The notes under the pieces are model-generated. The model was not told the origin of the DNA and ran no database searches. It saw nothing but the letters and a program-made list of their open reading frames with translations. Of a stretch of 64,000 nt of DNA, positions 7,768 through 43,791 are shown one piece after another; position 1 is the first letter of the stretch, and each line of letters opens with the position of its first letter. Made by a program: the position numbers and the translations under genes. This DNA comes from Adineta vaga (lineage: Eukaryota; Animalia; Rotifera), in assembly GCA_021613535.1 (NCBI GenBank), contig CP075492.1:16120001-16184000 (forward strand), read 5' to 3'.

Positions 7768-7849
7768 TCTTGAGGGTGGGTGTGGGTATGGATCTTCAGG
7801 GTGAAAAATGAGTATCACACCCACACCCATCCCACCCACACCCTCAAGA
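7768..7849. repeat. Telomere-like head-to-head junction J1
   Basis: TCTTGAGGGTGGGTGTGGG...unique spacer...CACACCCACACCCATCCCACCCACACCCTCAAGA. Confidence 0.9.
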
Positions 7850-20116: not shown

Positions 20117-20197
20117 GTGCGTGTGGGTGTTGGTGTGAGACTCATGTGTTAATATGTTATCCCCACACCTACCCAAACCCTCAACACACCCACACCC
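20117..20197. repeat. Degenerate telomere-like junction J2
   Basis: gtgcgtgtgggtgttggtgtgag / spacer / ccccacacctacccaaaccctcaacacacccacaccc. Confidence 0.6.
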
Positions 20198-20299
20198 TTT
20201 TAAATGTACTTCAATTTTCTTTCAAAATCTTATGAAATTTCTATATTATTTCCATATTTTAATATCAATATTCACGTTTTTTAACTACACCAGTTTTTC

Positions 20300-24240: not shown

Positions 24241-24320
24241 TCTTGAGGGTGGGTGTGGGTGTGGGTGTAGGGTGTGGGGTTAGTGCGGATGTATCTTCCT
24301 CAACCACACTCACCTTCAAC
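24241..24320. repeat. Telomere-like head-to-head junction J3
   Basis: TCTTGAGGGTGGGTGTGGGTGTGGGTGTAGGGTGTGGGG / spacer / cctcaaccacactcaccttcaac. Confidence 0.85.
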
Positions 24321-26179: not shown

Positions 26180-27947
26180 TTATTTTTCTACCGAAATTTT
26201 ATTTATCTTAAAAAACAACTTTTCTTTTTCTTTTTCTCTTTCGAAATCAAATCGAACGATTCGATAATTCCAACAATCTGAAACATAAAGATTTCCTTCA
26301 AAATCAAATGATAAACCAACGGGACTATTCAATTGATTTGATTCTCTTCTTGGACTATTTCCACCAACAGCAATCGAACCTTCTCCATCTCCTTCATACC
26401 ATCGCATTATTCGATGATTATTACAATCTGCCACAAAGATTTGATTCCATTCATCAACAAACAATCCTTGAGGAGAATTCAATTGATTGAGACTGTTTCC
26501 TTGACCATTTCCTCCAGCCACAACAATTCCTTCATTCGCATCTTTCCTCCATTTCATCACACGATGATTACCCGAATCTGAAACATAAAGAGATTGATCT
26601 TCATCAACAAAGATGAACGAAGGACAATTGAGTTGATTTCGGTGATTCCCTCTTCCATTCCCACCTGCAACTAATGTTCCTTCTTTGTTTTCATTAATGT
26701 TTTCTAACTTCCATTTTCTCACTTCATTCTTCTCTCGATCAGAAACATAAAGAAATCCATGTTGATCCATTGTTAAACCATAACAAAGAATATTTTCGAT
26801 GAGAATCTGTTGCTTTTGATCTCTTGACCATCGCATTACTTGTCTATTCTCTTGATCAGCAATGATGATTGAATGATTTTGTTGATCAAGAATCACATCT
26901 GTTGGTCTCTTCAATTGATCCATTCTATTTCCTTGTCCATCTCCACCTGCAAGGATGTGTCCTTGTTCTTCATCACATTTCCATTCAACAATACGATAGT
27001 TCCAGCAATCAGCAACGGCAATCGTTTTGCTTTCATCTATAAAGATTCCATGAGGACCATTGAGTTGATTTAATTGACTTCCTTGTCCATTTCCTCCCGC
27101 AACAATCGTTCCATTTTGTTGAAACGTTGATTCTAGAAAAAAAAGAGAAAAATTCTCTTTTGATTAATAAAAACGACTTTTCGAAGAAAAATGAAAGAAC
27201 TCCATTTTTTTTGTTAAATTCATGAAATTTTCGTTGTTCAATTCAATTGTTAAAATGATTTGTTGATAATAGTTGTGAATTATATAGCGCAGAAAGAAAT
27301 TCAAAGAAAAGTTTTTGTTAACAAATTATCAAAAATTTTGAACAGAAAAATCGATTTAGAGAATGATTAAATGGAAAATATTTATCGAACTGAAACATAA
27401 AGATTCAATGATTTTATTTTCACTTACTCTTTGATAAAACAATTGAAATTGAATTAATAAGTCCTTGACGATGTTCTTCAATTGAAATATTTGATGGATT
27501 ATTCAGTTGCCCATTAATTTTATTTAAGTATCCTCTTAAATCATTCAAATCAATTTCATTAAATTCATTTTCTCGTTGAATTGCTTTGATTTGTTCACTT
27601 AGTTCGTTTAACCTTTTTTCGGTGTCTTTAAAAGATATTTTGGAACATTTAACAACAATTTGTCGACATTTTTTAGCTGTTTGTTGAATTGTTTGAATTG
27701 AATTTGTTTCCCATTGATTAATTTGTTTGATCAATGAATGATTTTGTATATTTGATTTCAGTTCGTTTATTCTTTGTCTAAATTGATCATAATCATTGAC
27801 AACAACATTTAATTCTTCATTTAATAATTGTTGATGTTCATTGAAATCTTTTTGACAAAATTCTTTTGAACAACCTTGGCATTGAGTTATAAATTTTTTA
27901 TATTTCAGACATTTGAAACATTTTTTTGTATTATTTGCCATAGCCAT
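26180..27947 (-). CDS. B-box/coiled-coil + NHL-repeat protein (TRIM-NHL-like), copy 1
   Basis: Exon 1 has CFKC...CQGCSKEFC..DF.EH plus a coiled coil. Exon 2 (~27132-26180) has NHL repeats. Confidence 0.85.
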
Positions 27948-28869
27948 TTGTAAGAAAGAGACGTTGTAAAACTGAAAATGAAAGGATTCATGATGACGAA
28001 GATAAGAATAAAACGTCTCAAAGTAAATAATGATAAGATATGAAATATGTTGGAAAATAAAGATAGACGTGTCATATTTTAATATTATTTGATTCTATTC
28101 GTTTTGGTTGAGAATACATTTACATTAGCTGTTGAAAAATCATCTGAAAGAAAAGAATGTATATTCGATCATTTTCGACATATAGATATAGTGATAGAGG
28201 ACAAACCTCTTACAATATCTCTTTGAATCATAAATATTCAATTACGAAGAGTTTTATGCATAACTGAAAATTAAATTCTACAACTCGTCCATTTCTACGG
28301 GAATAAAAGAAACGTGATGTAATTGTTATTTCGAATACCTCGAGTCACACAGTCGAATCGACATTCTCAAGTTTTTGAGCCTATAAGTCCAGGTTGATAA
28401 TGTATCTTTTATGTCCTAATAATTACAGAAATTGACCGATTTCAACGCTCTTCCATATATTAAAATGATTTTATCTCAATAAAAATCATTTTTTAATGAA
28501 TTAATCGTAAACAGATTCTACCTATAACAATGTCACATTGGTTTACTTCTAAATGAAACAGACAAGATTTCTTTTTATATAATAATAATTTTAATACTTA
28601 ACAAAAGATAATTTCATCTTAAGACGATAATCATTTGAAAGATATACGAAACCATTGTTCGCAAACCTCAAAGAAAAATGAAAATAAATACAAAAAAACA
28701 GCATCATTTATACTGGCTTGTAGTCTCTCTCTCTACCTATGCTATAATCTTTCATAAGCAAGAAAAAAATCACGTAATCTGGACATAAAAGAAATTCCTT
28801 CTAAAAAATACCAGATTCGTCTCTGCTCGATTTACGCAGTTGCATTTAGTTACGTCGAAGTTAAAATTT

Positions 28870-29428
28870 GATTTGATGATATAACAGACTGTATTCAATG
28901 CATTTTCTCCTATGAAAAAAGCATTCCATGGACTTTGCCCTTATAAAACGATGTATGCTGGAATTTTTCCCATTAAAAACACACCGTTTCCCATAAAATT
29001 CAGTCACGTAAGCCACCACATTTCTCTCTCTTTGTTCAGCCTATATAAGACACCACTTTTCTTCACTGCCCATATCACTCAAGCAAGCTATTCTACAAAC
29101 CCATTATCGCCAATACTGCTATTCCTTATTACATTTATTCTTCACAAACAATATGGCTTCAAAACCCAAGCTTCCGCTGCAACAGCTACAATTTAACGAA
29201 CGTAAATTCCTACTTACAACTCCATAAAGGTTACTACACAACAGTTCATATCTGTTGATATATAACTTTTGTCATTAACATCAGTTTATAACCATGTATT
29301 TTGCTTGAATTTACTTAGATTTAGTTTTCGCTTATTTTAAGCTGAAAGTGATTGAATTTGATCATTTTTAAGCAAGCAACCATCTGATGAGAACTGCAGT
29401 AGGTTCGAAACGCGTCAAGGCTGCTTGT
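28870..29428 (+). mobile_element. 3'-terminal fragment (pLTR-like) of an Athena/Terminon Penelope-like retroelement
   Basis: Ends in a hammerhead ribozyme directly followed by CACACCCACACCCA, the known 3'-end architecture of bdelloid Athena/Terminon elements. The left boundary is approximate and no RT ORF is present. Confidence 0.65.
29373..29427 (+). ncRNA. Minimal type I hammerhead ribozyme
   Basis: Stem I CAAGCAACC/GGCTGCTTG. Core CTGATGA (29384-29390). Stem II GAAC/GTTC, then GAAA (29407-29410). Palindromic mini stem III ACGCGT and GUC cleavage triplet ending at 29416. Confidence 0.9.
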
Positions 29429-30496
29429 CACACCCACACCCACCCATGCAGACATATTAACGCCAAAAACGGTGTTTTAACGCGTTTATGTGCAAAAACA
29501 TTGAAAAAAACGCTGTAAAACAGATTAATATGATTTTTAAAAGGCTTAACGTGTTTAAACCAGTTTTTTTAATTTTAACAGGCTTTAACGCACTGAGTCC
29601 ACGAAAATTATGATTTGATGCGGTTTAACGTAAAAATCAAATCGTTTTCAATGCGTTTGTACATAAGACATAGAACCGATAACAAGTGTCTCGGTCAAAT
29701 GCATTTTTGTTTTTATCCTGCAGAAACAACGCATTTTAATGAGTTGATAGAATGTCATATAACTTTATTAGAATGTGTTATTTATTTTGTCAAAGAAAGA
29801 CGACAAACTTTTATGTGCTAGAATATAGATTTGAAAATTAATAAAAAAATATTGAGTCAATAAGTGGAGGAAGATTTGTATTTGTGCCAAATCTAAAGGC
29901 AAGTTTTTGTATCAAATATTCGTAATAAACAGGTTCGATGGATGATCCACGATTGAAATCCTTAATTTTCACTAACATAAACTATGATTTTACTAACTTC
30001 ACATTTAATAACTGTTCGTAGACATATCGAGCATAGAGCATATACTTTAGATAATCTATTATAAAGCAACTAAAGTAAAACGCGTTTCCATTAGATATTG
30101 GCCCATTTCTATTAGTATTTTTATCGACCAATGACGTCACTCTTCTTTGTTTTCGGTTAGTATAAAAGAAAAGACGGAGATGCAATAAATCATTTGTTTC
30201 GTTTCACACTCAATTGATCGGTGTATTATATACATATTCATATTTATTATCTTTGCTCATACAAAAATATTCATACGCTATCTAATTATATATAACAAGA
30301 TAATTTATATTTCTCATATTCTTTGTTGCATCAGTTTTTATTTAATGATATTTTCTATAACAAGTCCGTTAGTCGAGTCAAACTGATTTCTAAAATACGC
30401 AATATTAATATTATCTGACGAAAGAGAATATCCAAGACATAAGCATTTTTTTTCTCTTGAAATAATCCAATTGAGTTTTTATACAGATTGAGGTCA

Positions 30497-30588
30497 ATAT
30501 ATATCGTAGGACAGATTAAAATTAAGTTCAATTTAAAACTGAACTAGTGCAGATCAAAATATTTCAATCTGTCCTACAACATATATAT
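30497..30588. repeat. Small inverted repeat (MITE-like)
   Basis: atatatcgtaggacagatt ... aatctgtcctacaacatatat. Confidence 0.55.
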
Positions 30589-30805
30589 GAATACATTATG
30601 ATTACCGAGATAAGAGGAAACATCAAATAACCTTGATAGAGAAAGTAGTACAGAGAGAATTTCTTCGTTAGATGTTTGAATCGTTAAGTTATCTATCTAG
30701 TCGACGAGTACCGAGCGAGAATATCCACTACACTATTTTTTCATGACAACAGATTTCGACACTACAAAAATTCAATGGAGTAGATTCAAAGTAAGAATAA
30801 GTGAG

Positions 30806-31350
30806 AAATGAATAGCATACCGATAAACTCATACAACAAATATGAATAGTATTTAGTATCAGTTAGACGATATCATGTAACACTGCTTCGTATATTAAAT
30901 CAAATATTGACAGTGTAAGGATTCGAATAATATTATTCTCATTTGTAGAAAGACTGTAAATATTGACAAAGTCATAATATTTTAGCGAATATCTCGAAGT
31001 TTTCTTGAACATTTTGTCTTTAATAACCAAACAAATCTCACATAATAATGGGGCTAATGATGAATTTCTTAAAGTCTAGGTTGTCATTTGTTTTATATTA
31101 AGTATTTTGGCATTATGTAAGACTGGTTTGGTTATTAAAGACAAAATGTTCAAGAAAACTACGAGATATTCGCTAAAATATTATGACTTTGTCAATATTT
31201 ACAGTCTTTCTACAAATGAGAATAATATTATTCGAATCCTTACACTGTCAATATTTGATTTAATATACGAAGCAGTGTGACATGATATCGTCTAACTGAT
31301 ACTAAATACTATTCATTTGTTGCATGAGTTTATCGATATCCTACTCATTT
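30806..31350. repeat. Long near-perfect inverted repeat (fold-back), arms ~240 bp, loop ~65 bp
   Basis: 30806-31046 is the reverse complement of 31112-31350 with few mismatches. Confidence 0.9.
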
Positions 31351-32067
31351 TTAATGTGTCCAACGCATTACGATTCTTATCAAAACGGTTTGAATTACTC
31401 AGTTTCAATATGCTGTTAAAGCAATGCAAAAAATGAATTGCAGGATAAATGCATTAGAATGGGTTTTTTTACTCAAATATAGTTGTACACCATCAAAAAT
31501 GTCCGAAATCATGCGTTTTAATGCATTAATATGATAAACTCAAAAAATTGTTTAGTTCACAAATAGTCAAAACTAGTTTAAAATAGGAAACCAATGCGAT
31601 TGTTAAAACGCACAATTCCGGACCTTTTTGACTGAGCGAAACGCATTAAGTGAAAGAAAAGGAGCATTTATTAAAACGTGTCAGTCTCATATTTTTGACT
31701 GCATGGGCATCCTCAACCACACCCACATCCATCCACACCATCCTCACACCCACATCCACCCTCACCCTCACCCACCCTCACCCACTCTCACCCTCAAGAG
31801 GATCCGCTTTCTCCCCTTGGGAATACTGCTTCCCGGAACCATCGTCCTGAAAATACGGTAATGTAAAATGGTATTTTTTCCTGTTCTCTCTGCTATTGTT
31901 GGATTTTTCTTCTGTTCTTTTTTTTAATGTTGGATTTTTCCTTTATGTTTATTTTACCTCTTAAGAATTTTTTATCATTTATTTCAAGTATTTACTCACA
32001 AGTGTTGTTATCAGCTGAATATAAAAGAAAGTTTTTTTTTCAGATAAAACATACTTTTTAGTGCAAT

Positions 32068-33474
32068 ATGGCCTTGCCGATTGTTCTGGCTGGCTTAGCA
32101 GGGTTTGGAATGGGTGGAGGTATCATTTGGAATAAATATTTGAGAGCTTCAAAAGATACTCCTTATGATATTGTTATTCGTCTAAACAGCCTTCTTGCAC
32201 TAAGAACAACTGGTTGGGAAATTGCACTCAGTGAAAATGCAATAAGATTTGGACAAACAGAACCAACTTCGGAAGGGACTCGTGGTTTAGTTGTTGCAGT
32301 TCTTGGTTCATACAATCGTGGAAAATCATTTTTGCTTAATTTACTCTGTGATACAAAGCTACCAAGTGGAAATTTAGTTAGTACAGAAGGTATTTCTATT
32401 ACAATACCAAAAAATACTGCTGAAAACATCATTTTTATTGATACTGCTGGCACTGATACAGCTATACCAAAGAATGAACTCGATGATAAAAAAGCAACGG
32501 AAGCTCTTTTAAGAGAAGTAGCACTTCATTTATCTTCATTCATAATAATTGTGGTCAATCGTTTACGAGCAACAGATCAAACATATATTCGCCAAGTATT
32601 AACACGGGTCAAAGAGTCTAAACAAGATAAAGATATAATTATTGTTCATAACTTAATGGATATTGAAACAAAGAAAGATATTCAAGACGTAATTAATAGA
32701 GAATTGATAAACCTTTTTGAAGCTAAACCAGAAACAATGAAAATACGATCCATATCAGAACCAGTGAAATTTTACCGTTCTGAAAATTATGGTATTGCCC
32801 TTCGTCATTTTATTTTGGCTAAAATTGATTCACCTGCAGCAGAAATGTGGAATCGTCAAACTATTGATGCAATTATGATTATTTTGCAAGGTGCGACAAA
32901 CTCAAAACGAAATCTTAATGTTATAGGTGAAACAATAAGCTTTGTTAATACTAAACTTTCACAAATACTTATTAATGAGAATAGTCAAGACAATAAAGTT
33001 CAGACCGAACAAGATCCTAATACACTTAATATTGTGCTTTCGGAGCGAGTAGTAATGGAAGATCTTAAAGCAAATCCTACTCCATTAAAACTATCATTAA
33101 AACTTGCGTATGATGAAGCTGGTTATTTTATGGGATTTGATTCGATGGATACTGGACAATGGCAACCTCTTTATAGTGTATATGAGTATAACGATGAGAT
33201 CTGTGCTATCATTGAACTTGGTGGAGTTAAAAGCGAATCTACTAGAGTAACAGTTATCGCAAAAGGTATTTGTGTTGAAGGTGAAAGAGAAGATTTTAAA
33301 TTATCAGAACAAAGACCAACTGTTCATCACGAAAAAATTCCATATGGACGTTTTAAACTAAATATTGCATTGAATTGTGAAGTTAATCAAGAACAAGCAA
33401 AATTAGAACGCGATATAGGGATGTATAAAATAAGATGTCCGAAAAGAAAAGATACACCAACAGTTCTTCAATGA
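32068..33474 (+). CDS. P-loop GTPase (dynamin/GBP-like) fused to a C-terminal HSP20/alpha-crystallin domain, intronless
   Basis: G1 GSYNRGKS, G2 TEG, G3 DTAG, G4-like VHN. C-terminal IELGGV....RVTV..KGICVEGERE...YGRFKLNIAL...IGMYKIRCPK fits the HSP20 pattern. N-terminal hydrophobic anchor. Confidence 0.85.
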   Translation: MALPIVLAGLAGFGMGGGIIWNKYLRASKDTPYDIVIRLNSLLALRTTGWEIALSENAIRFGQTEPTSEGTRGLVVAVLGSYNRGKSFLLNLLCDTKLPSGNLVSTEGISITIPKNTAENIIFIDTAGTDTAIPKNELDDKKATEALLREVALHLSSFIIIVVNRLRATDQTYIRQVLTRVKESKQDKDIIIVHNLMDIETKKDIQDVINRELINLFEAKPETMKIRSISEPVKFYRSENYGIALRHFILAKIDSPAAEMWNRQTIDAIMIILQGATNSKRNLNVIGETISFVNTKLSQILINENSQDNKVQTEQDPNTLNIVLSERVVMEDLKANPTPLKLSLKLAYDEAGYFMGFDSMDTGQWQPLYSVYEYNDEICAIIELGGVKSESTRVTVIAKGICVEGEREDFKLSEQRPTVHHEKIPYGRFKLNIALNCEVNQEQAKLERDIGMYKIRCPKRKDTPTVLQ

Positions 33475-33727
33475 AAAGCACCTATTTTGGTTCAATTAAT
33501 TAAAACACATACAATTTTTTAATTCTGATTCTTGTGAGACCATTTATTCTTGAAGTACTAATAAAATATCACTTAATTGAAAACATATTTTGAAAATACT
33601 TTCGCCAAAACAGTATTATGTATAATTAATGTTCTATGTTAACCTTTGTTTAAGGATGTGAGTGCGAATTAGACCAGTGTGGAAAGCGATACTTGTGTAC
33701 TTCCAAGTAGGATATGAGAGTACGATG

Positions 33728-33842
33728 CACTGTAAAAAAAAGAGCAGAATAATCAACCCTTTTTAGGGGTTTATTAGCCTTATGATTTATAAGGAGAGTA
33801 TGTTATACGTTGCACTTTCATATACCCTTAAAGGGCTTATTA
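33728..33842 (+). mobile_element. Truncated CACTA/EnSpm-type left end
   Basis: Starts CACTGTAAAAAAAAG, followed by aaccct/aggggtt/aaagggc subterminal motifs; stops at J5. Confidence 0.5.
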
Positions 33843-33920
33843 ACTTGAGAGTGTGGGTTGTAGGTTAAATTCAATTACCACACACTCATACCCACACCCA
33901 CCCTCACCCACACCCACACC
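33843..33920. repeat. Telomere-like head-to-head junction J5
   Basis: ACTTGAGAGTGTGGGTTG / spacer / ccacacactcatacccacacccaccctcacccacacccacacc. Confidence 0.8.
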
Positions 33921-34476
33921 ATCTAATTTGAAAAGTTGTCGATATGTATTACTTACTTCGTAGATAAATATCCTATTTTAATAAATTCATATTCGCATCG
34001 TTGTTTTTATCAGAGGAAACGAATTTTTTTCTATAGGATGCACATAAGTAAGGGAAGAAAAGAGACACCCATATCTTCGGGTTATTTGAGACAATAATTA
34101 CAAAACATTTAGTTTACTTCAGAAAAAACTGATGAACTTTATAGAAATGAATTTCCAAGTATACGCAACTTTCTTCGTAATTGAATATTTATGATTTAAA
34201 GAGATATTTCAAGAGATTCTCTTTAATCTCTTTATTCATACGCCGGAAATGATTGAAAATACATTCGTTTGTTTTTCAGTTTCTTTTCTAATGGTACATA
34301 TGTGTATATTTATAATAAAAAGGGAAAGAACGAAATAGTATAAAGACTATGACTCGACCATCTTTATTTTCCAACGTATTTCGTTTCTTATCATTATTGA
34401 CTTTCGAGCATTTTATTCTTATCTTCATCAACATGAATCTTCCCATTTTCAGTTTTAAAATTTCTCTTTCCTACCG

Positions 34477-36392
34477 ATGGATATGGCAAACAGCACAAAA
34501 CAATGTTTCAAATGTCTGAAATATAAAAAAATTACAGTCCTTTGTAGAGGATGTTCAAAAGAATTTTGTCTCGCAGATTTACATGAACATCAACAATTAT
34601 TAAATGAAGAATTAAATGTTGTTATCAATGATTATGATCAATTTAGACAAGGAATAAACGATCGAAAACAAAATCCATTAAATCATTCGTTGATCGAACA
34701 AATTGGTCAATGGGAAACAAATTCAATTCAAATTATTCGACAAACAGCTGAAAAATGTCGACAAAATGCTATTGAATATTCGAGAATACATTTAAAAGAG
34801 ATCGAACACACGTTAACCGAATTAGGTGAACAAATCAAAGCAATTCAACGAGAAAATGAATTCAATGAAATTGATTTGAAGGATTTAAAAAGAAAATTAA
34901 ATAAAATGACCGAAGAACTGAATCATCCATCAAATATTTCAATTGAAGAATATAATCAAGGATTTATTATTGAAATTTCAGTAATTTCAAGAAGGAGTAA
35001 GTTGAAAGTTTTGAATTCTTATTTTATTGAAAAGAAAAATTGATTTTAAACTCATGCCTAAACATTTAAATTTTCTAATGAAAAACAAAAAGACAAGTGA
35101 AATTAATATAACATGAAATTCATAACGACATTCAATTATTTTCTCTGTGATTCAATGTAGTTTTATGTTCTTCATTCGAACGAATAAGAGAAACTTCGAT
35201 ATTTCGTATCCAAAATGGCAAAATAACTAAAAAAACATCATTTTTAGAGAGATTAATTTAGTCTTTGTTATTTAATTCAACGAGTAAAACTAATTTCTAA
35301 TCTTTTAACATTTGTCTTTATCCTTAGAATTTAGTTCAATTAGACATTTATAAGATGATGGAGAATTAAGTAAAGAGAGAATTAATAGATATGCTAATGT
35401 GCACTTATAAATGCAAAAGAGAATCTTTGATTTGTTCCATCAATTTCAAATTTTCGTTTGATTAAAAAACGAACTTTTCCTTTTCTTTGTTTAGAAACGA
35501 AATTTCAACAAAATGGAAGAATTGTTGCTGGAGGAAATGGACAAGGAAGTCAATTAAATCAACACTCTAGTCCTCTCAGAACCTTTGTTGATGAAAAAAA
35601 AACCATTTTCATTGCTGATTGTTCGAATCATCGTATTGTTCAATGGAAATGTAATGAAAACAAGGACAAATCATTGCAGGTGGAAATGGAAAAGGAAATA
35701 GAATGGATCAATTGACTTATCCGACAGATGTGATTGTTAATCAACAAAATCATTCAATCATCATTGCTGATTGTATGAATAGACGAGTGATGCGATGGTC
35801 ACGAGATCAAAAACAACAAATTCTCATTCAAAATATTCGTTGTTATGGTTTAACAATGGATCAACATGGATTTCTTTATGTTTCTGATCATGAGAAGAAT
35901 GAAGTGAGAAAATGGAAGTTAGAAAACATTAATGAGAACAAAGAAGGAACATTAGTTGCAGGTGGAAATGGAAGAGGAAATCAACGAAATCAACTCGACT
36001 GTCCTACTTTCATCTTTGTTGATAAAGTTCAATCTGTTTATGTTTCAGATCGAGATAATCATCGTGTGATGAAATGGAGAAAAGATGCGAATGAAGGAAT
36101 TGTTGTGGCTGGAGGAGATGGTCAAGGAAATAATCTCAATCAATTGAATTCTCCTCATGGATTGTTTGTTGATGAATGGAATCAAATCTATGTGGCAGAT
36201 TGTGGGAATCATCGAATAATGCGATGGTATGAAGGAGATAAAGAAGGTTCAGTTATTGTTGGTGGAAATGGTCAAGGAAGTGAATCAAATCAATTGAATA
36301 GGCCCACTGGTTTATCATTTGATTTTGAAGGAAATCTTTATGTTTCAGATTCTGGAAATAATCGAATCGTTCGATTTGATAAAATTTATTGA
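34477..36392 (+). pseudogene. B-box/coiled-coil + NHL gene, copy 2 (frameshifted)
   Basis: Exon 1 34477-34996, exon 2 ~35495-36392. One A is missing at ~35660 relative to copy 3 (gaaaacaagg vs gaaaaacaagg), splitting the ORF. Confidence 0.8.
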
Positions 36393-38836: not shown

Positions 38837-40752
38837 ATGGCCACTGGTAAGGAAAATAATATTGATATGGATGCTGATGACTACGAACACTTTTTACCGT
38901 ACTATCTCTACGTCGGAAATCATTTGGAACAGTACTATCAGGAATACGTAAAGAATCACGGGGATCCTCAAACAGCAGTTTCGTTACAAGAGACCGAACC
39001 TCAGGACGAGCTCTCTCAACCTTCTTCCGAAACATCAGAAGGTCATCCCACACCACGTCAATTCGAAAAGATGTGTTACGCCACTGCAGGTCCAGCCTGT
39101 GAACGTCTTGCAGCTGAGACTCGCCAGAATGTCAAACTGATCGAGCCAAGAACAATACATACGTACCGTTATAAGGATGCGAAGACAGGAGAAATGGTGG
39201 AGAAAGGTATTAAACCTGACATGATTATAGCGTTCAGCCATGATGGCGTTAGGGGTAAGAATGTCGTTGTCGATGCAAAATCACACAAGGGCGCTATACA
39301 AATGTCAGACTATCGCAAACTAGACCGAGATCGAAAAGTGACAAAGGTAAGCAAGTTTGAAATATCCGGGGAAGACAGTCGGCTTTGATGTTCTGTGGTA
39401 GAATAATTTTCATGAACTATTTGTTTTAGTCCTCACATGCTATTCTTTTTATCAACACAAACAGTAAATTACCAAAGTCCGTAGAGGAAGCAGTTGAAGC
39501 CGATCCACATATGAATATCATTCGGTACAACGGTGAACAGCCCAATGCTACTTCAAGAGAATTTGTCGACAAAGTTGGTCCTCATGTAAGTGGTTCCGAA
39601 TTCCGAGCAGACGATCAGCGTTACGAAAATAACAAACAGTACGTTGATCAGTCTGATCTTAAGAAACAAAAATATCCGAATCCTCTCGGTAAACAGAACA
39701 GTGAACTAACTAAGAACACACATCGCCATTTCACTGGTTACGACTTTCGGCATCCCCGCAAGCCAGATGGCTCGCTAGATAGAGATCAGGCGGTGAACGA
39801 AGGTTTGAAAGAAGATGGAACGCTAGACATGCGTCTCAACGAAAACAAGAATGTTGAACAAGTGGAACAGCATCTCACACAGGCAGGTGAGCCAGATATG
39901 CGTTTTGCTGAAAACAAGAATGTTGAACAAGTGGAACAGCATCTCACACAGGCAGGTGAGCCAGATATGCGTTTTGCTGAAAACAAGAATGTTGAAGAAG
40001 TGGAACAGCATCTTACACAGGCAGGTGAGCCAGATATGCGTTTTGCTGAAAACAAGAATGTTGAACAAGTGGAACAGCATCTCACACAGGCAGGTGAGCC
40101 AGATATGCGTTTTGCTGAAAACAAGAATGTTGAAGAAGTGGAACAGCATCTTACACAGGCAGGTGAGCCAGATATGCGTTTTGCTGAAAACAAGAATGTT
40201 GAACAAGTGGAACAGCATCTCACACAGGCAGGTGAGCCAGATATGCGTTTTGCTGAAAACAAGAATGTTGAAGAAGTGGAACAGCATCTTACACAGGCAG
40301 GTGAACCAGATATGCGCTTTAAGGAAAATCAGGAGGCAGTGGCATCTGCGGAAGCTCAAACAATCGATAGTGGTGGTGAGTTTTCCTCTGATATGTTTTA
40401 AATGTATGACAAGATAGTTTTTTTCCGTTAAATTAGAAGAAACTGTAGCTGAAGTTGGAATATCGTCTGGTAGTGGAGAAGGGGACGAACACCTTAAAGC
40501 CGATGGTACTCCTGATATGCGATATAGCTCCAACAGAGAAGATATAGCAGAGATGGAAGAAACTGAAGATATACCAGAAATGAATGAAGGTTTGTACAGT
40601 TTTGTTTTTGAAATTCTCTCAAAACCGCAAAACCTCTCTGTTTCATAGGTATGAGTACAATGAGCCTTGACGATGGCGGTGCGGATAGTGCTGGTGATGG
40701 ACCATTAAAAGCAGATGGTACACCTGATATGCGCTTCAGTGCTAACCAGTGA
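38837..40752 (+). CDS. PD-(D/E)XK (Mrr/restriction-endonuclease-like) nuclease with C-terminal GxPDMR repeats, 4 exons
   Basis: Introns 39347-39429, 40376-40436 and 40590-40648 splice in frame; TGA at 40750-40752. Motifs QFEKMC, KPDMII, VVVDAK, then a helix and HAILFINT strand. Seven 23-aa repeats plus KPDGSLDR, KEDGTLDMR and two KADGTPDMR motifs. Confidence 0.75.
39826..40320 (+). repeat. Coding tandem repeat, 7 x 69 nt, with 138-nt higher-order period
   Basis: gaaaacaaga recurs every 69 nt (39841, 39910, ...). Variants run Q,Q,E,Q,E,Q,E with linked synonymous ctc/ctt changes. Confidence 0.95.
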
Positions 40753-40992: not shown

Positions 40993-41079
40993 TCTTGAGG
41001 GTGGGTGAGGGTGTGAGTGTGGGTGTGGATGTGGGTGCTAGACAGTTGCAGTACACCCACACCCACACCCTCACACCAC
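40993..41079. repeat. Telomere-like head-to-head junction J6
   Basis: TCTTGAGGGTGGGTGAGGGTGTGAGTGTGGGTGTGGATGTGGGTG / ctagacagttgcagta / CACCCACACCCACACCCTCACACCAC. Confidence 0.9.
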
Positions 41080-41914
41080 GCTTTTGATTCATAGTGTTAA
41101 ACTAAGTTCACATTAGATTTTTTTCTTTTTTAGTTTATTAAATTGTGTTCAATCTATTTAAGAGATTTATTTATCGATATTCCAATGTTTTCTTTTTTTA
41201 AATATATTAAGGAATATTGAAAAAGAACAAAAAAATATTTGAATTCGTTTTCAATCTATCAGTGTGAATCAGAATGATCATAAATATCAAAGAAGAAATA
41301 AATTCATCGATTAAATGTCAAGATTTTGACACAACAGAGTTTACAAAAAAAAGATTTTTATTGTGATAAAATCATTTTAATATATGGAAGAGTGTTGAAA
41401 TCGGTCAATTAGTGTAAGGATTAGGGCATGAAAGATACACTCTCAACCTGGACTTAGGCTCAAAAACTTGAGAATGTCGATTCGACCGTGTGACTCGAGT
41501 TATTCGAAACAATAATTACAAAACGTTTCTTTTATTCCCGTAAAAATAGGCGAGTTGTAAAATTTAATTATCACTTATGCACAACCCTCTTCGTTTAAAT
41601 TGAATATTTGTAATTCAAAGAGATTTTTCAAGCGGTTGTTCCCCCCATCGCTATATCTATATGTGGAAAATGATCGAATAAGTCTATTAAGTCGAATTTG
41701 CATTTTATTTTGTTTCAGATAATTTTTCAACAGTGAAGATATGTTTTCATGATAAAAAGGAAAAGAATCAAATAATAGTAAAAAATATGACTCAACCATC
41801 TTTATTTTCCAACATATTTCGTTTCTTATCATTATTGACTTTCGAGCATTTTATTCTTATCTTCATCAACATGAATCTTCCCATTTTCAGTTTTAAAATT
41901 TCTCTTTCCTACCG

Positions 41915-43791
41915 ATGGATATGGCAAACAGCACAAAACAATGTTTCAAATGTCTGAAATATAAAAAAATTACAGTCCTTTGTAGAGGATGTTCAAAAGA
42001 ATTTTGTCTCGCAGATTTACATGAACATCAACAATTATTAAATGAAGAATTAAATGTTGTTATCAATGATTATGATCAATTTAGACATTCGATAAACGAT
42101 CAAAAACAAAATCCACAAAACCATTCATTGATCAAACAAATTAATCAATGGGAAATAAATTCAATTCAAAGAATTCAACAAACATCTGAAAAATGTCGAC
42201 AAAATATTATTGAGCATTTCAAAACATCTCTTAGAGAGATCGAACAAAAATTAAAGGAACTAAGTGAACAGATCAAAGCAATTCAACGAGAAAATGAATT
42301 TAACGAAATTGATTTGAATGGTTTAAGAGAAAAACTAAGTAAAATGACTGAAGAACTGAATCATCCATCAAATATTTCAATTGAAGGACATAATCAAGGA
42401 TTTATTAAGGAAATTTCAATTGTTTTATCAGATAGTAAGTAAAAATAAAATCATCGAATCTTTATGTTTTGAAAACTTATTAATAAAAATTTTCTTTGAA
42501 TTACTTTCTACATTAGATAATTCGCAATTATCATCAACAAATCATTTTAACAATTTAAAAACGAAAACTTCACCTGTTCAACAAAAAAGTAAAGTTTCTT
42601 TATTTTTCTTGGAAGCGAAAACGAATTCTTAAATCAAATGTTTCAATGAAATAATGAAGAAATCTCTCAATTTCATTTCTTTTTCAATTTGATCACGAAG
42701 ATTTTCTCATTCTCATTATCTTTTTGTATAAATTTCTTTCGAAAAACGTTTCAACCCTTAGTTTTCATTTCCATCTTTTGAAATCACAAATCACTTATTA
42801 TTCAGAACAAAATTCGTTTCTATTAAAACAACCCTTATCAATTTTTCCTTTTTCCCTATAGAAATTTTTGTATTTTTCTCTTCATTTTCTAGAATCAATA
42901 TTTCAACAACATGGAAGAATTGTTGCGGGAGGAAATGGAGATGGAAGGCAATTAAATCAGCTCTCCAATCCTTATGGAATCTTTGTTGATGAAAACAAAA
43001 TCATTTTCATTGCTGATTGTTCGAATCATCGTATTGTTCAATGGAAATATGATGAAAAACAAGGACAAATCATTGCAGGTGGAAATGGAAAAGGAAATAG
43101 AATGGATCAATTGACTTATCCGACAGATGTGATTGTTAATCAACAAAATCATTCAATCATCATTGCTGATTGTATGAATAGACGAGTGATGCGATGGTCA
43201 CGAGATCAAAAACAACAAATTCTCATTCAAAATATTCGTTGTTATGGTTTAACAATGGATCAACATGGATTTCTTTATGTTTCTGATCATGAGAAGAATG
43301 AAGTGAGAAAATGGAAGTTAGAAAACATTAATGAGAACAAAGAAGGAACATTAGTTGCAGGTGGAAATGGAAGAGGAAATCAACGAAATCAACTCGACTG
43401 TCCTACTTTCATCTTTGTTGATAAAGTTCAATCTGTTTATGTTTCAGATCGAGATAATCATCGTGTGATGAAATGGAGAAAAGATGCGAATGAAGGAATT
43501 GTTGTGGCTGGAGGAGATGGTCAAGGAAATAATCTCAATCAATTGAATTCTCCTCATGGATTGTTTGTTGATGAATGGAATCAAATCTATGTGGCAGATT
43601 GTGGGAATCATCGAATAATGCGATGGTATGAAGGAGATAAAGAAGGTTTAGTTATTGTTGGTGGAAATGGTCAAGGAAGTGAATCAAATCAATTGAATAG
43701 GCCCACTGGTTTATCATTTGATTTTGAAGGAAATCTTTATGTTTCAGATTCTGGAAATAATCGAATCGTTCGATTTGATAAAATTTATTGA
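41915..43791 (+). CDS. B-box/coiled-coil + NHL-repeat protein, copy 3 (intact)
   Basis: Exon 1 41915-42434 and exon 2 42893-43791 are in frame. Confidence 0.88.

Follow-up and report, generated by a model that had tools for sequence, protein, structure and literature searches.

The closest described systems are the Athena/Terminon retroelements of Adineta vaga. They have the same 3' end as the element described here, and their RNA pairs with G-rich overhangs (PMC6431247 section 8; PMC8557442 introduction). In the published copies, which are 5'-truncated, short stretches of telomere repeats and captured host genes lie between one copy and the next (PMC6431247; PMC8557442). The work of Gladyshev and Arkhipova (2007) and Arkhipova et al. 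(2017) on Athena/Terminon is cited according to the summaries in these two papers. Telomere repeats and Athena fragments were also found at fresh deletion breakpoints in A. vaga lines, and EU643487 was the Athena reference sequence in that study (PMC13564844). For hammerhead ribozymes of Penelope-like elements with a palindromic helix III, dimer formation and the need for a second copy or a helper have been proposed (Cervera and De la Pena, 2014; PMC4209133), in a paper that also mentions rotifer examples. A third system bears on the sequence beside telomere repeats. In the vertebrate TERC-ITS, telomerase RNA sequence flanks interstitial telomere repeats at repaired breaks (PMC2246262; PMC8537989).

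The locus was analysed in a window of 64 000 nt (C3:16120001-16184000) of the A. vaga genome. According to the initial annotation of this window, a hammerhead ribozyme joined to a C-rich telomere tract marks a former chromosome end, now internal, that had been capped by an Athena/Terminon element. As in Athena/Terminon, reverse-complement telomere repeats stand right after the 3' hammerhead (29430-29442 and 31708-31794), the family is 5'-truncated, subtelomeric and found in head-to-tail arrays with telomere repeats, and the host species is the same. Unlike Athena/Terminon, the window copy measures only about 960 bp and lacks a reverse transcriptase, and its identity to its nearest relatives is about 75%. 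At its 5' end it adjoins a host gene block, with no telomere repeats in between. A distance of 4.17 Mb separates it from the chromosome end, and it is oriented away from that end. The hammerhead shares with those of Penelope-like elements (PMC4209133) its type I form, full core, short palindromic helix III and location in a terminal repeat. It differs from them in stem II, which has 5 bp, a 6-nt loop and no bulged base. A bulged stem II is present in sister ribozyme subfamilies of the genome.

Experimental procedures

The chromosome-level assembly of A. vaga (PMC8494291) was searched (100.8 Mb, six contigs; telomere repeat (TGTGGG)n). Positions preceded by a contig name (C1, C3, C4 or C6) refer to this assembly and all others to the window. 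A covariance model was made from the alignment of 21 genomic ribozyme copies, and genome matches with E up to 0.01 were counted as family copies. Assignment of the element to Athena/Terminon was based on its genomic relatives and on published descriptions of the 3' end. The order of events at the locus was deduced from the anatomy of the locus and the published mechanism.

Results

A hammerhead ribozyme family with telomere-repeat tails

The type I hammerhead ribozyme with palindromic helix III lies at 29370-29429 on the + strand. All its core bases are intact: CTGATGA at 29384-29390, GAAA at 29407-29410 and GTC at 29414-29416. The two strands of stem I were read at 29372-29383 (5' strand) and 29417-29429 (3' strand), stem II (GAACT/GGTTC, closed by the 6-nt loop) at 29391-29406 and helix III, the palindrome ACGCGT, at 29410-29415. 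Cleavage is predicted after C17 (C29416). The reverse-complement telomere repeats ACACCCACACCCA follow directly at 29430-29442 (+) and form both the tail of the element and the start of the tract. The complete minimal hammerhead with a C-rich tract immediately 3' that the initial annotation had described is therefore present.

The strict hammerhead pattern had one match in the window for 0.04 expected. With helix III fixed as ACGCGT (GAAACGCGTC), 26 matches were obtained in the genome and none in the reversed control. On the window, the ribozyme copy reached 60.2 bits with the covariance model (E 5e-15), and no other match exceeded 13.8 bits; by this model, the copy at 29370-29429 is the sole family member in the window. 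A scan with hammerhead models had been proposed in the initial annotation. The Rfam hammerhead models gave no match on the window, whether at the gathering score or with E relaxed to 10, as expected of models that require a helix III loop, which is absent here.

At least 129 family copies were detected in the genome with the covariance model, among which the window copy ranks 24th. In the 21-copy alignment, 81% of the cells of stems I and II were paired, versus 21-42% with slid partners. Compensatory changes on both sides were counted in 32 cells of these stems, and the observed values were matched in none of 500 shuffles. Eight of the 11 stem pairs vary on both sides, and the ACGCGT helix III is invariant (21/21 copies). 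Among the distinct copies with an exact core, about 21 of 25 carry (A/T)CACCC repeats 12-16 nt past the cut site. The telomere-repeat tail is a trait of the ribozyme family, and the initial annotation's concern that other copies might stand apart from telomeric repeats was not borne out.

The motif could in principle have arisen by chance, or it could belong to an endonuclease-bearing Penelope element that inserts anywhere, the adjacent telomere-like repeats being coincidental. The silence of the Rfam models would fit such an origin, as would the folding of a single RNA, in which the hammerhead (-12.7 kcal/mol) is less stable than the minimum-energy alternative (-17.7 kcal/mol). However, this explanation is refuted by the counts of 26 against none in the control, the 60-bit model score, the covarying stems and the tail shared by the family, and we regard it as scarcely tenable. 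The preference of the modelled monomer for a non-hammerhead fold agrees with the published need for a second copy or a helper (PMC4209133). As helix III (ACGCGU) has no loop, it would form only between two copies or with help; the dimerisation attributed to the palindromic stem III in the initial annotation corresponds to this published idea. Two of the six stem I pairs closest to the core are mismatched in the window copy, which has therefore probably decayed and become inactive.

Apart from about two, the 129 model matches are all located no more than about 5 Mb from a contig end. Tandem copies with a period of 216 nt were found at C3:20.277 Mb and at the left end of C4. Inner units of these arrays end in ACACACAC, and a long tract follows the last unit only. 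Each 216-nt hammerhead unit (C3:20277170-20277662; C4:2693-2984) starts at a TGCTCAAGC motif, which in longer copies stands about 30-35 nt past a TATA box. This arrangement suggests that each unit was copied from a short transcript that extends from a TGCTCAAGC-type start to the ribozyme tail. They resemble serial additions of such a transcript, possibly a non-autonomous derivative of Athena.

A truncated element joined to a telomere tract

The ribozyme is preceded on the same strand by the 5'-truncated 3' region of an Athena/Terminon-like element (pLTR-like, without reverse transcriptase; 28485-29369, +). This region is colinear with the copy at C4:2693-3839, which in window order runs from C4:3839 to C4:2693. 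Identity was 75% over 612 nt for 28485-29089 and 78% for 29267-29443. The C4 copy sits in a head-to-tail array with units separated by (GGGTGT)n at C4:2550-2687 and C4:5502-5519. The true left telomere, at about C4:1-125, is 2.5 kb away from this array, and a telomere-repeat cap is present at the 5' truncation of the related C4 copy. A lack of similarity to the pLTRs of Penelope-like elements had been named in the initial annotation as an argument against the element; the 960 bp upstream proved colinear with an array copy near the end of C4. At the same chromosome end (C4:1-5700), a terminal block of 2.5 kb is bordered by C-rich repeats on the outside and by G-rich ones on the inside. The neighbouring Athena copies there point toward the telomere, the opposite of a simple accretion model.

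A TATA box (29042-29049, +) and, about 30-35 nt after it, the motif CTCAAGCAAGC (29078-29088, +) are both conserved in the C4 copy, and the related 216-nt units start at the matching TGCTCAAGC. To judge from these positions, the two elements are likely to be an internal promoter and a transcript start. No reverse transcriptase ORF was found in the window copy and no notable + strand ORF in the fragment. In the sister copy C1:16343817, two RVT_1-like ORFs with hundreds of bdelloid homologues are located on the same strand, 0.7-3.2 kb upstream; against solved structures they gave weak matches only. No telomere tract was found at the 5' junction of the window fragment (28400-28500), although a simple accretion model predicts one. 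The fragment is an old, 5'-truncated copy. It is most probably the fossil 3' end of an endonuclease-less Penelope-like retroelement of the Athena/Terminon type, joined to the telomere tract that primed it.

The tract is interrupted by a 2,265-bp non-coding transposon (29443-31707, +) bounded by terminal inverted repeats of 9-12 nt (CCCATGCAG/CTGCATGGG). A full copy, 94% identical, was found at C3:6169113-6171370 and partial copies at C3:2455225-2456939 and C3:1856505-1857319. Since copies 94-95% identical are present elsewhere on C3, 29443-31707 is a later insertion. The transposon holds an inner inverted repeat of 205 nt, and all four copies found are on C3. The copy at C3:1856505 is truncated internally, and a C-rich telomere tract adjoins the cut directly.

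Past the transposon, the C-rich tract resumes with degenerate repeats (31708-31794, +). At its inner end it reaches CACCCTCAAGA (31789-31799, +), the constant flank that had been called the anchor in the initial annotation. With the transposon removed, ACACCCACACCCA is joined to CATCCTCAACCACACCC...CACCCTCAAGA in one continuous tract of about 100 nt that ends at 31799; the annotated continuation of the tract beyond the insertion, up to the anchor, was thus recovered. Contigs from four independent DNA data sets (four studies) span both transposon junctions with no difference, and no empty-site form was seen in these contigs. The locus was absent from the RNA data sets searched. A joint of 29425 to 31763 in one run was considered as an empty site and rejected, as it most likely comes from the paralogue C3:20338874.

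An Athena cDNA might also have been captured during repair of a break inside a pre-existing interstitial tract, the resected G strand serving as primer with neither telomerase healing nor a free end. Interstitial tracts are very common in the genome, a tract truncates one of the copies of the inserted transposon (C3:1856505) and Athena fragments occur at breakpoints (PMC13564844), all of which would suit this course of events. However, an exposed G-rich 3' end is still needed, which makes the capture a variant of the reading as a primed tract rather than an alternative to it, and nothing at the locus separates the two. We consider it improbable that the junction arose by this route.

The constant flank of the telomere tracts

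The flank reads CTCAAGA at the window locus, and its genome-wide consensus is CTCAAGATGG(T). The 15-mer CCCWCACCCTCAAGA had 644 genomic matches, split 323 to 321 between the two strands, versus 0 for the control. CAAGA is followed by T in 28 of 30 sites and then by G in 19 of 30; T follows CAAGATGG in 62 of 100 sites and GGT in 33 of 52. Conservation fades outward, and the DNA further out differs at every site. Behind other Athena tails the flank is shortened to C, CAA or CAAGA. The copies C1:16343817, C3:20338874 and C6:3846801, like the window copy, run into the full CTCAAGA flank and then into unrelated DNA. With these three further copies, in which tail, tract and CTCAAGA are followed by unrelated flanks, this type of junction occurs repeatedly and is not a single locus that was duplicated.

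Many tracts consist of just one to two repeats and occur in pairs of G-tract, spacer and C-tract. In the window, the constant flank TCTTGAGGGTG / CACCCTCAAGA was found at inner tract ends at 7768-7849, 24241-24320, 40993-41074 and 31789-31799. Head-to-head pairs of tracts (7773-7844, 20122-20198, 24246-24317 and 40998-41074) enclose 15-55 nt of unrelated spacer, with the flank on their outer sides. Such pairs resemble breaks whose two ends had each been seeded with repeats by the time of rejoining.

A fixed sequence that decays outward is the expectation for copying of one template with a variable starting point. We tentatively propose, while holding it to be somewhat doubtful, that the flank is not target DNA and may have been copied from the telomerase RNA just 3' of the template, roughly CACCCACACCCUCAAGAUGGU. 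The nearest precedent, by analogy, is that of the vertebrate TERC-ITS. Similarity is limited to the flank: a short non-telomeric sequence at one end of the tract, head-to-head pairs and the look of a repaired break. Unlike the vertebrate sequences, the candidate rotifer flank measures about 7-14 nt (25-98 nt in vertebrates) and is present hundreds of times per genome, not a handful of times.

A genome search for candidate loci of the telomerase RNA gene found none that held up. The site C6:5988373 shares 16 nt with the extended flank, but it reads like protein-coding sequence (exon). C4:9674843, like two further sites, proved to be an ordinary tract or tract pair. Two other origins of the flank were rejected. 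The ATG in the flank is not a start codon, since a stop was met within about 20 codons (hand translation, three of 30 sites). Nor is the flank a spliced leader or the 5' end of some retro-copied RNA, as the DNA beyond it differs at every site.

If the flank does come from telomerase RNA, each of the more than 640 tracts would represent telomerase starting anew on a broken end. The flank would give a first view of the rotifer telomerase template, in which the bases 3' of the template would read UCAAGAUGGU, and TGAGGG variant repeats would be explained by realignment on UCA. The pairs of G-tract, spacer and C-tract would be breaks seeded at both ends before rejoining, and the Athena tail would independently show that the seeded end had a usable G overhang. 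On the same condition, the initial annotation's view that the anchored tracts were once open ends gains support from the Athena tail on the anchored tract in the window and from the three other copies with tail, tract and CTCAAGA.

Neighbouring gene blocks and position on the chromosome

C3 is 20,354,754 bp long, which places the locus at the stated 4.17 Mb from its right end. The left neighbour of the fragment is a B-box/coiled-coil/NHL-repeat gene block (26180-28494, -; NHL 5.5e-26; inverted pairs I1-I8 and I12). It is the inverted paralogue of the blocks at 34139-36380 (+) and 41346-43779 (+). Homology of the NHL block ends at 28494, where the Athena fragment begins (28485). The absence of a 5' telomere tract, together with the abutting NHL paralogue, indicates that the Athena-capped end was joined to other DNA without a telomere seed.

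The two direct NHL blocks are 7.4 kb apart and almost identical (99-100% over 300-nt reference stretches, 86% over a third), and a C-tract stands about 220-270 nt upstream of each. The inverted block (26246-28494, -) is older, at 83-91% identity. Elsewhere in the window, seven tandem copies of a 69-nt unit (39753-40397) lie within a gene and are 94-96% identical in the middle of the array.

To the right of the tract, a block with one intronless GTPase-HSP20 gene (31800-33890, +; ORF 32068-33474) bore the tract on its left end. The domains detected in the ORF were MMR_HSR1 (2.5e-08) and, just under the cut-off, the C-terminal HSP20 (5.9e-04). C-rich tracts are present on both sides of this block (right tract, 33891-33918), and the constant flank is on its left side only.

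Beyond 15 Mb of C3, the minus strand carries 12 family copies and the plus strand 10; with such mixed orientation, the arm is not a simple outward stack. The element in the window does not point outward either, and both features together indicate that the region has been rearranged and that the order of events cannot be read from it directly. This bears on the possibility that the junction formed at a normal terminus, in a subtelomeric Athena array, and that an inversion or translocation then moved the block inward, without healing of an internal break. The window is within the 5-Mb outer zone of C3 in which copies cluster, the mixed copy orientation points to much rearrangement and the neighbourhood contains both inverted and direct duplications of gene blocks. 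On the other side, the constant flank at inner ends marks more than 640 mostly short interstitial tracts, many of them far from termini, and the flanking block is a single gene between tracts, which looks more like piecewise capture and healing. We therefore find a relocated terminus unlikely. It differs from the healing of an end at an internal break only in the place of that end; in both, the tract is a former end.

Discussion

The reading that we prefer is that of a free end extended by telomerase and then capped by Athena. The left end of the DNA that now starts at 31800 would have been free, and telomerase would have added about 100 nt of repeats to it, the constant flank first. An Athena-family RNA, with a 3' end made of the hammerhead fold and a short (ACACCC)n tail, would then have paired with the G-rich overhang. 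Reverse transcription from this overhang as primer would have added at least 28485-29442. Next, an inverted paralogue of a neighbouring NHL-gene block would have become attached to the new end with no telomere repeats in between, which would have placed the junction inside the chromosome. Last, the DNA transposon would have inserted into the tract.

That the tract was once an exposed end capped by Athena, the central claim of the initial annotation, is supported by the tail as a family trait, by the colinearity with the C4 copy and by the published mechanism. We infer a former chromosome end in this sense, and it may have been a short-lived healed break instead of a stable terminus.

The locus, although real, is an ordinary case of a mechanism already published, and both the observation and its interpretation are known for A. 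vaga. What it adds is a clean and dated fossil, about 75% identical to its relatives, into which a transposon still 94% identical to its own relatives inserted later. The DNA end that was capped is now 4 Mb inside a chromosome. The locus shows that an 'anchored' tract once bore a free G overhang, and it ties the constant flank of interstitial tracts throughout the genome to ends that were truly open. This is of relevance to the healing and rejoining of broken chromosomes in bdelloids, and perhaps to their capture of foreign genes.
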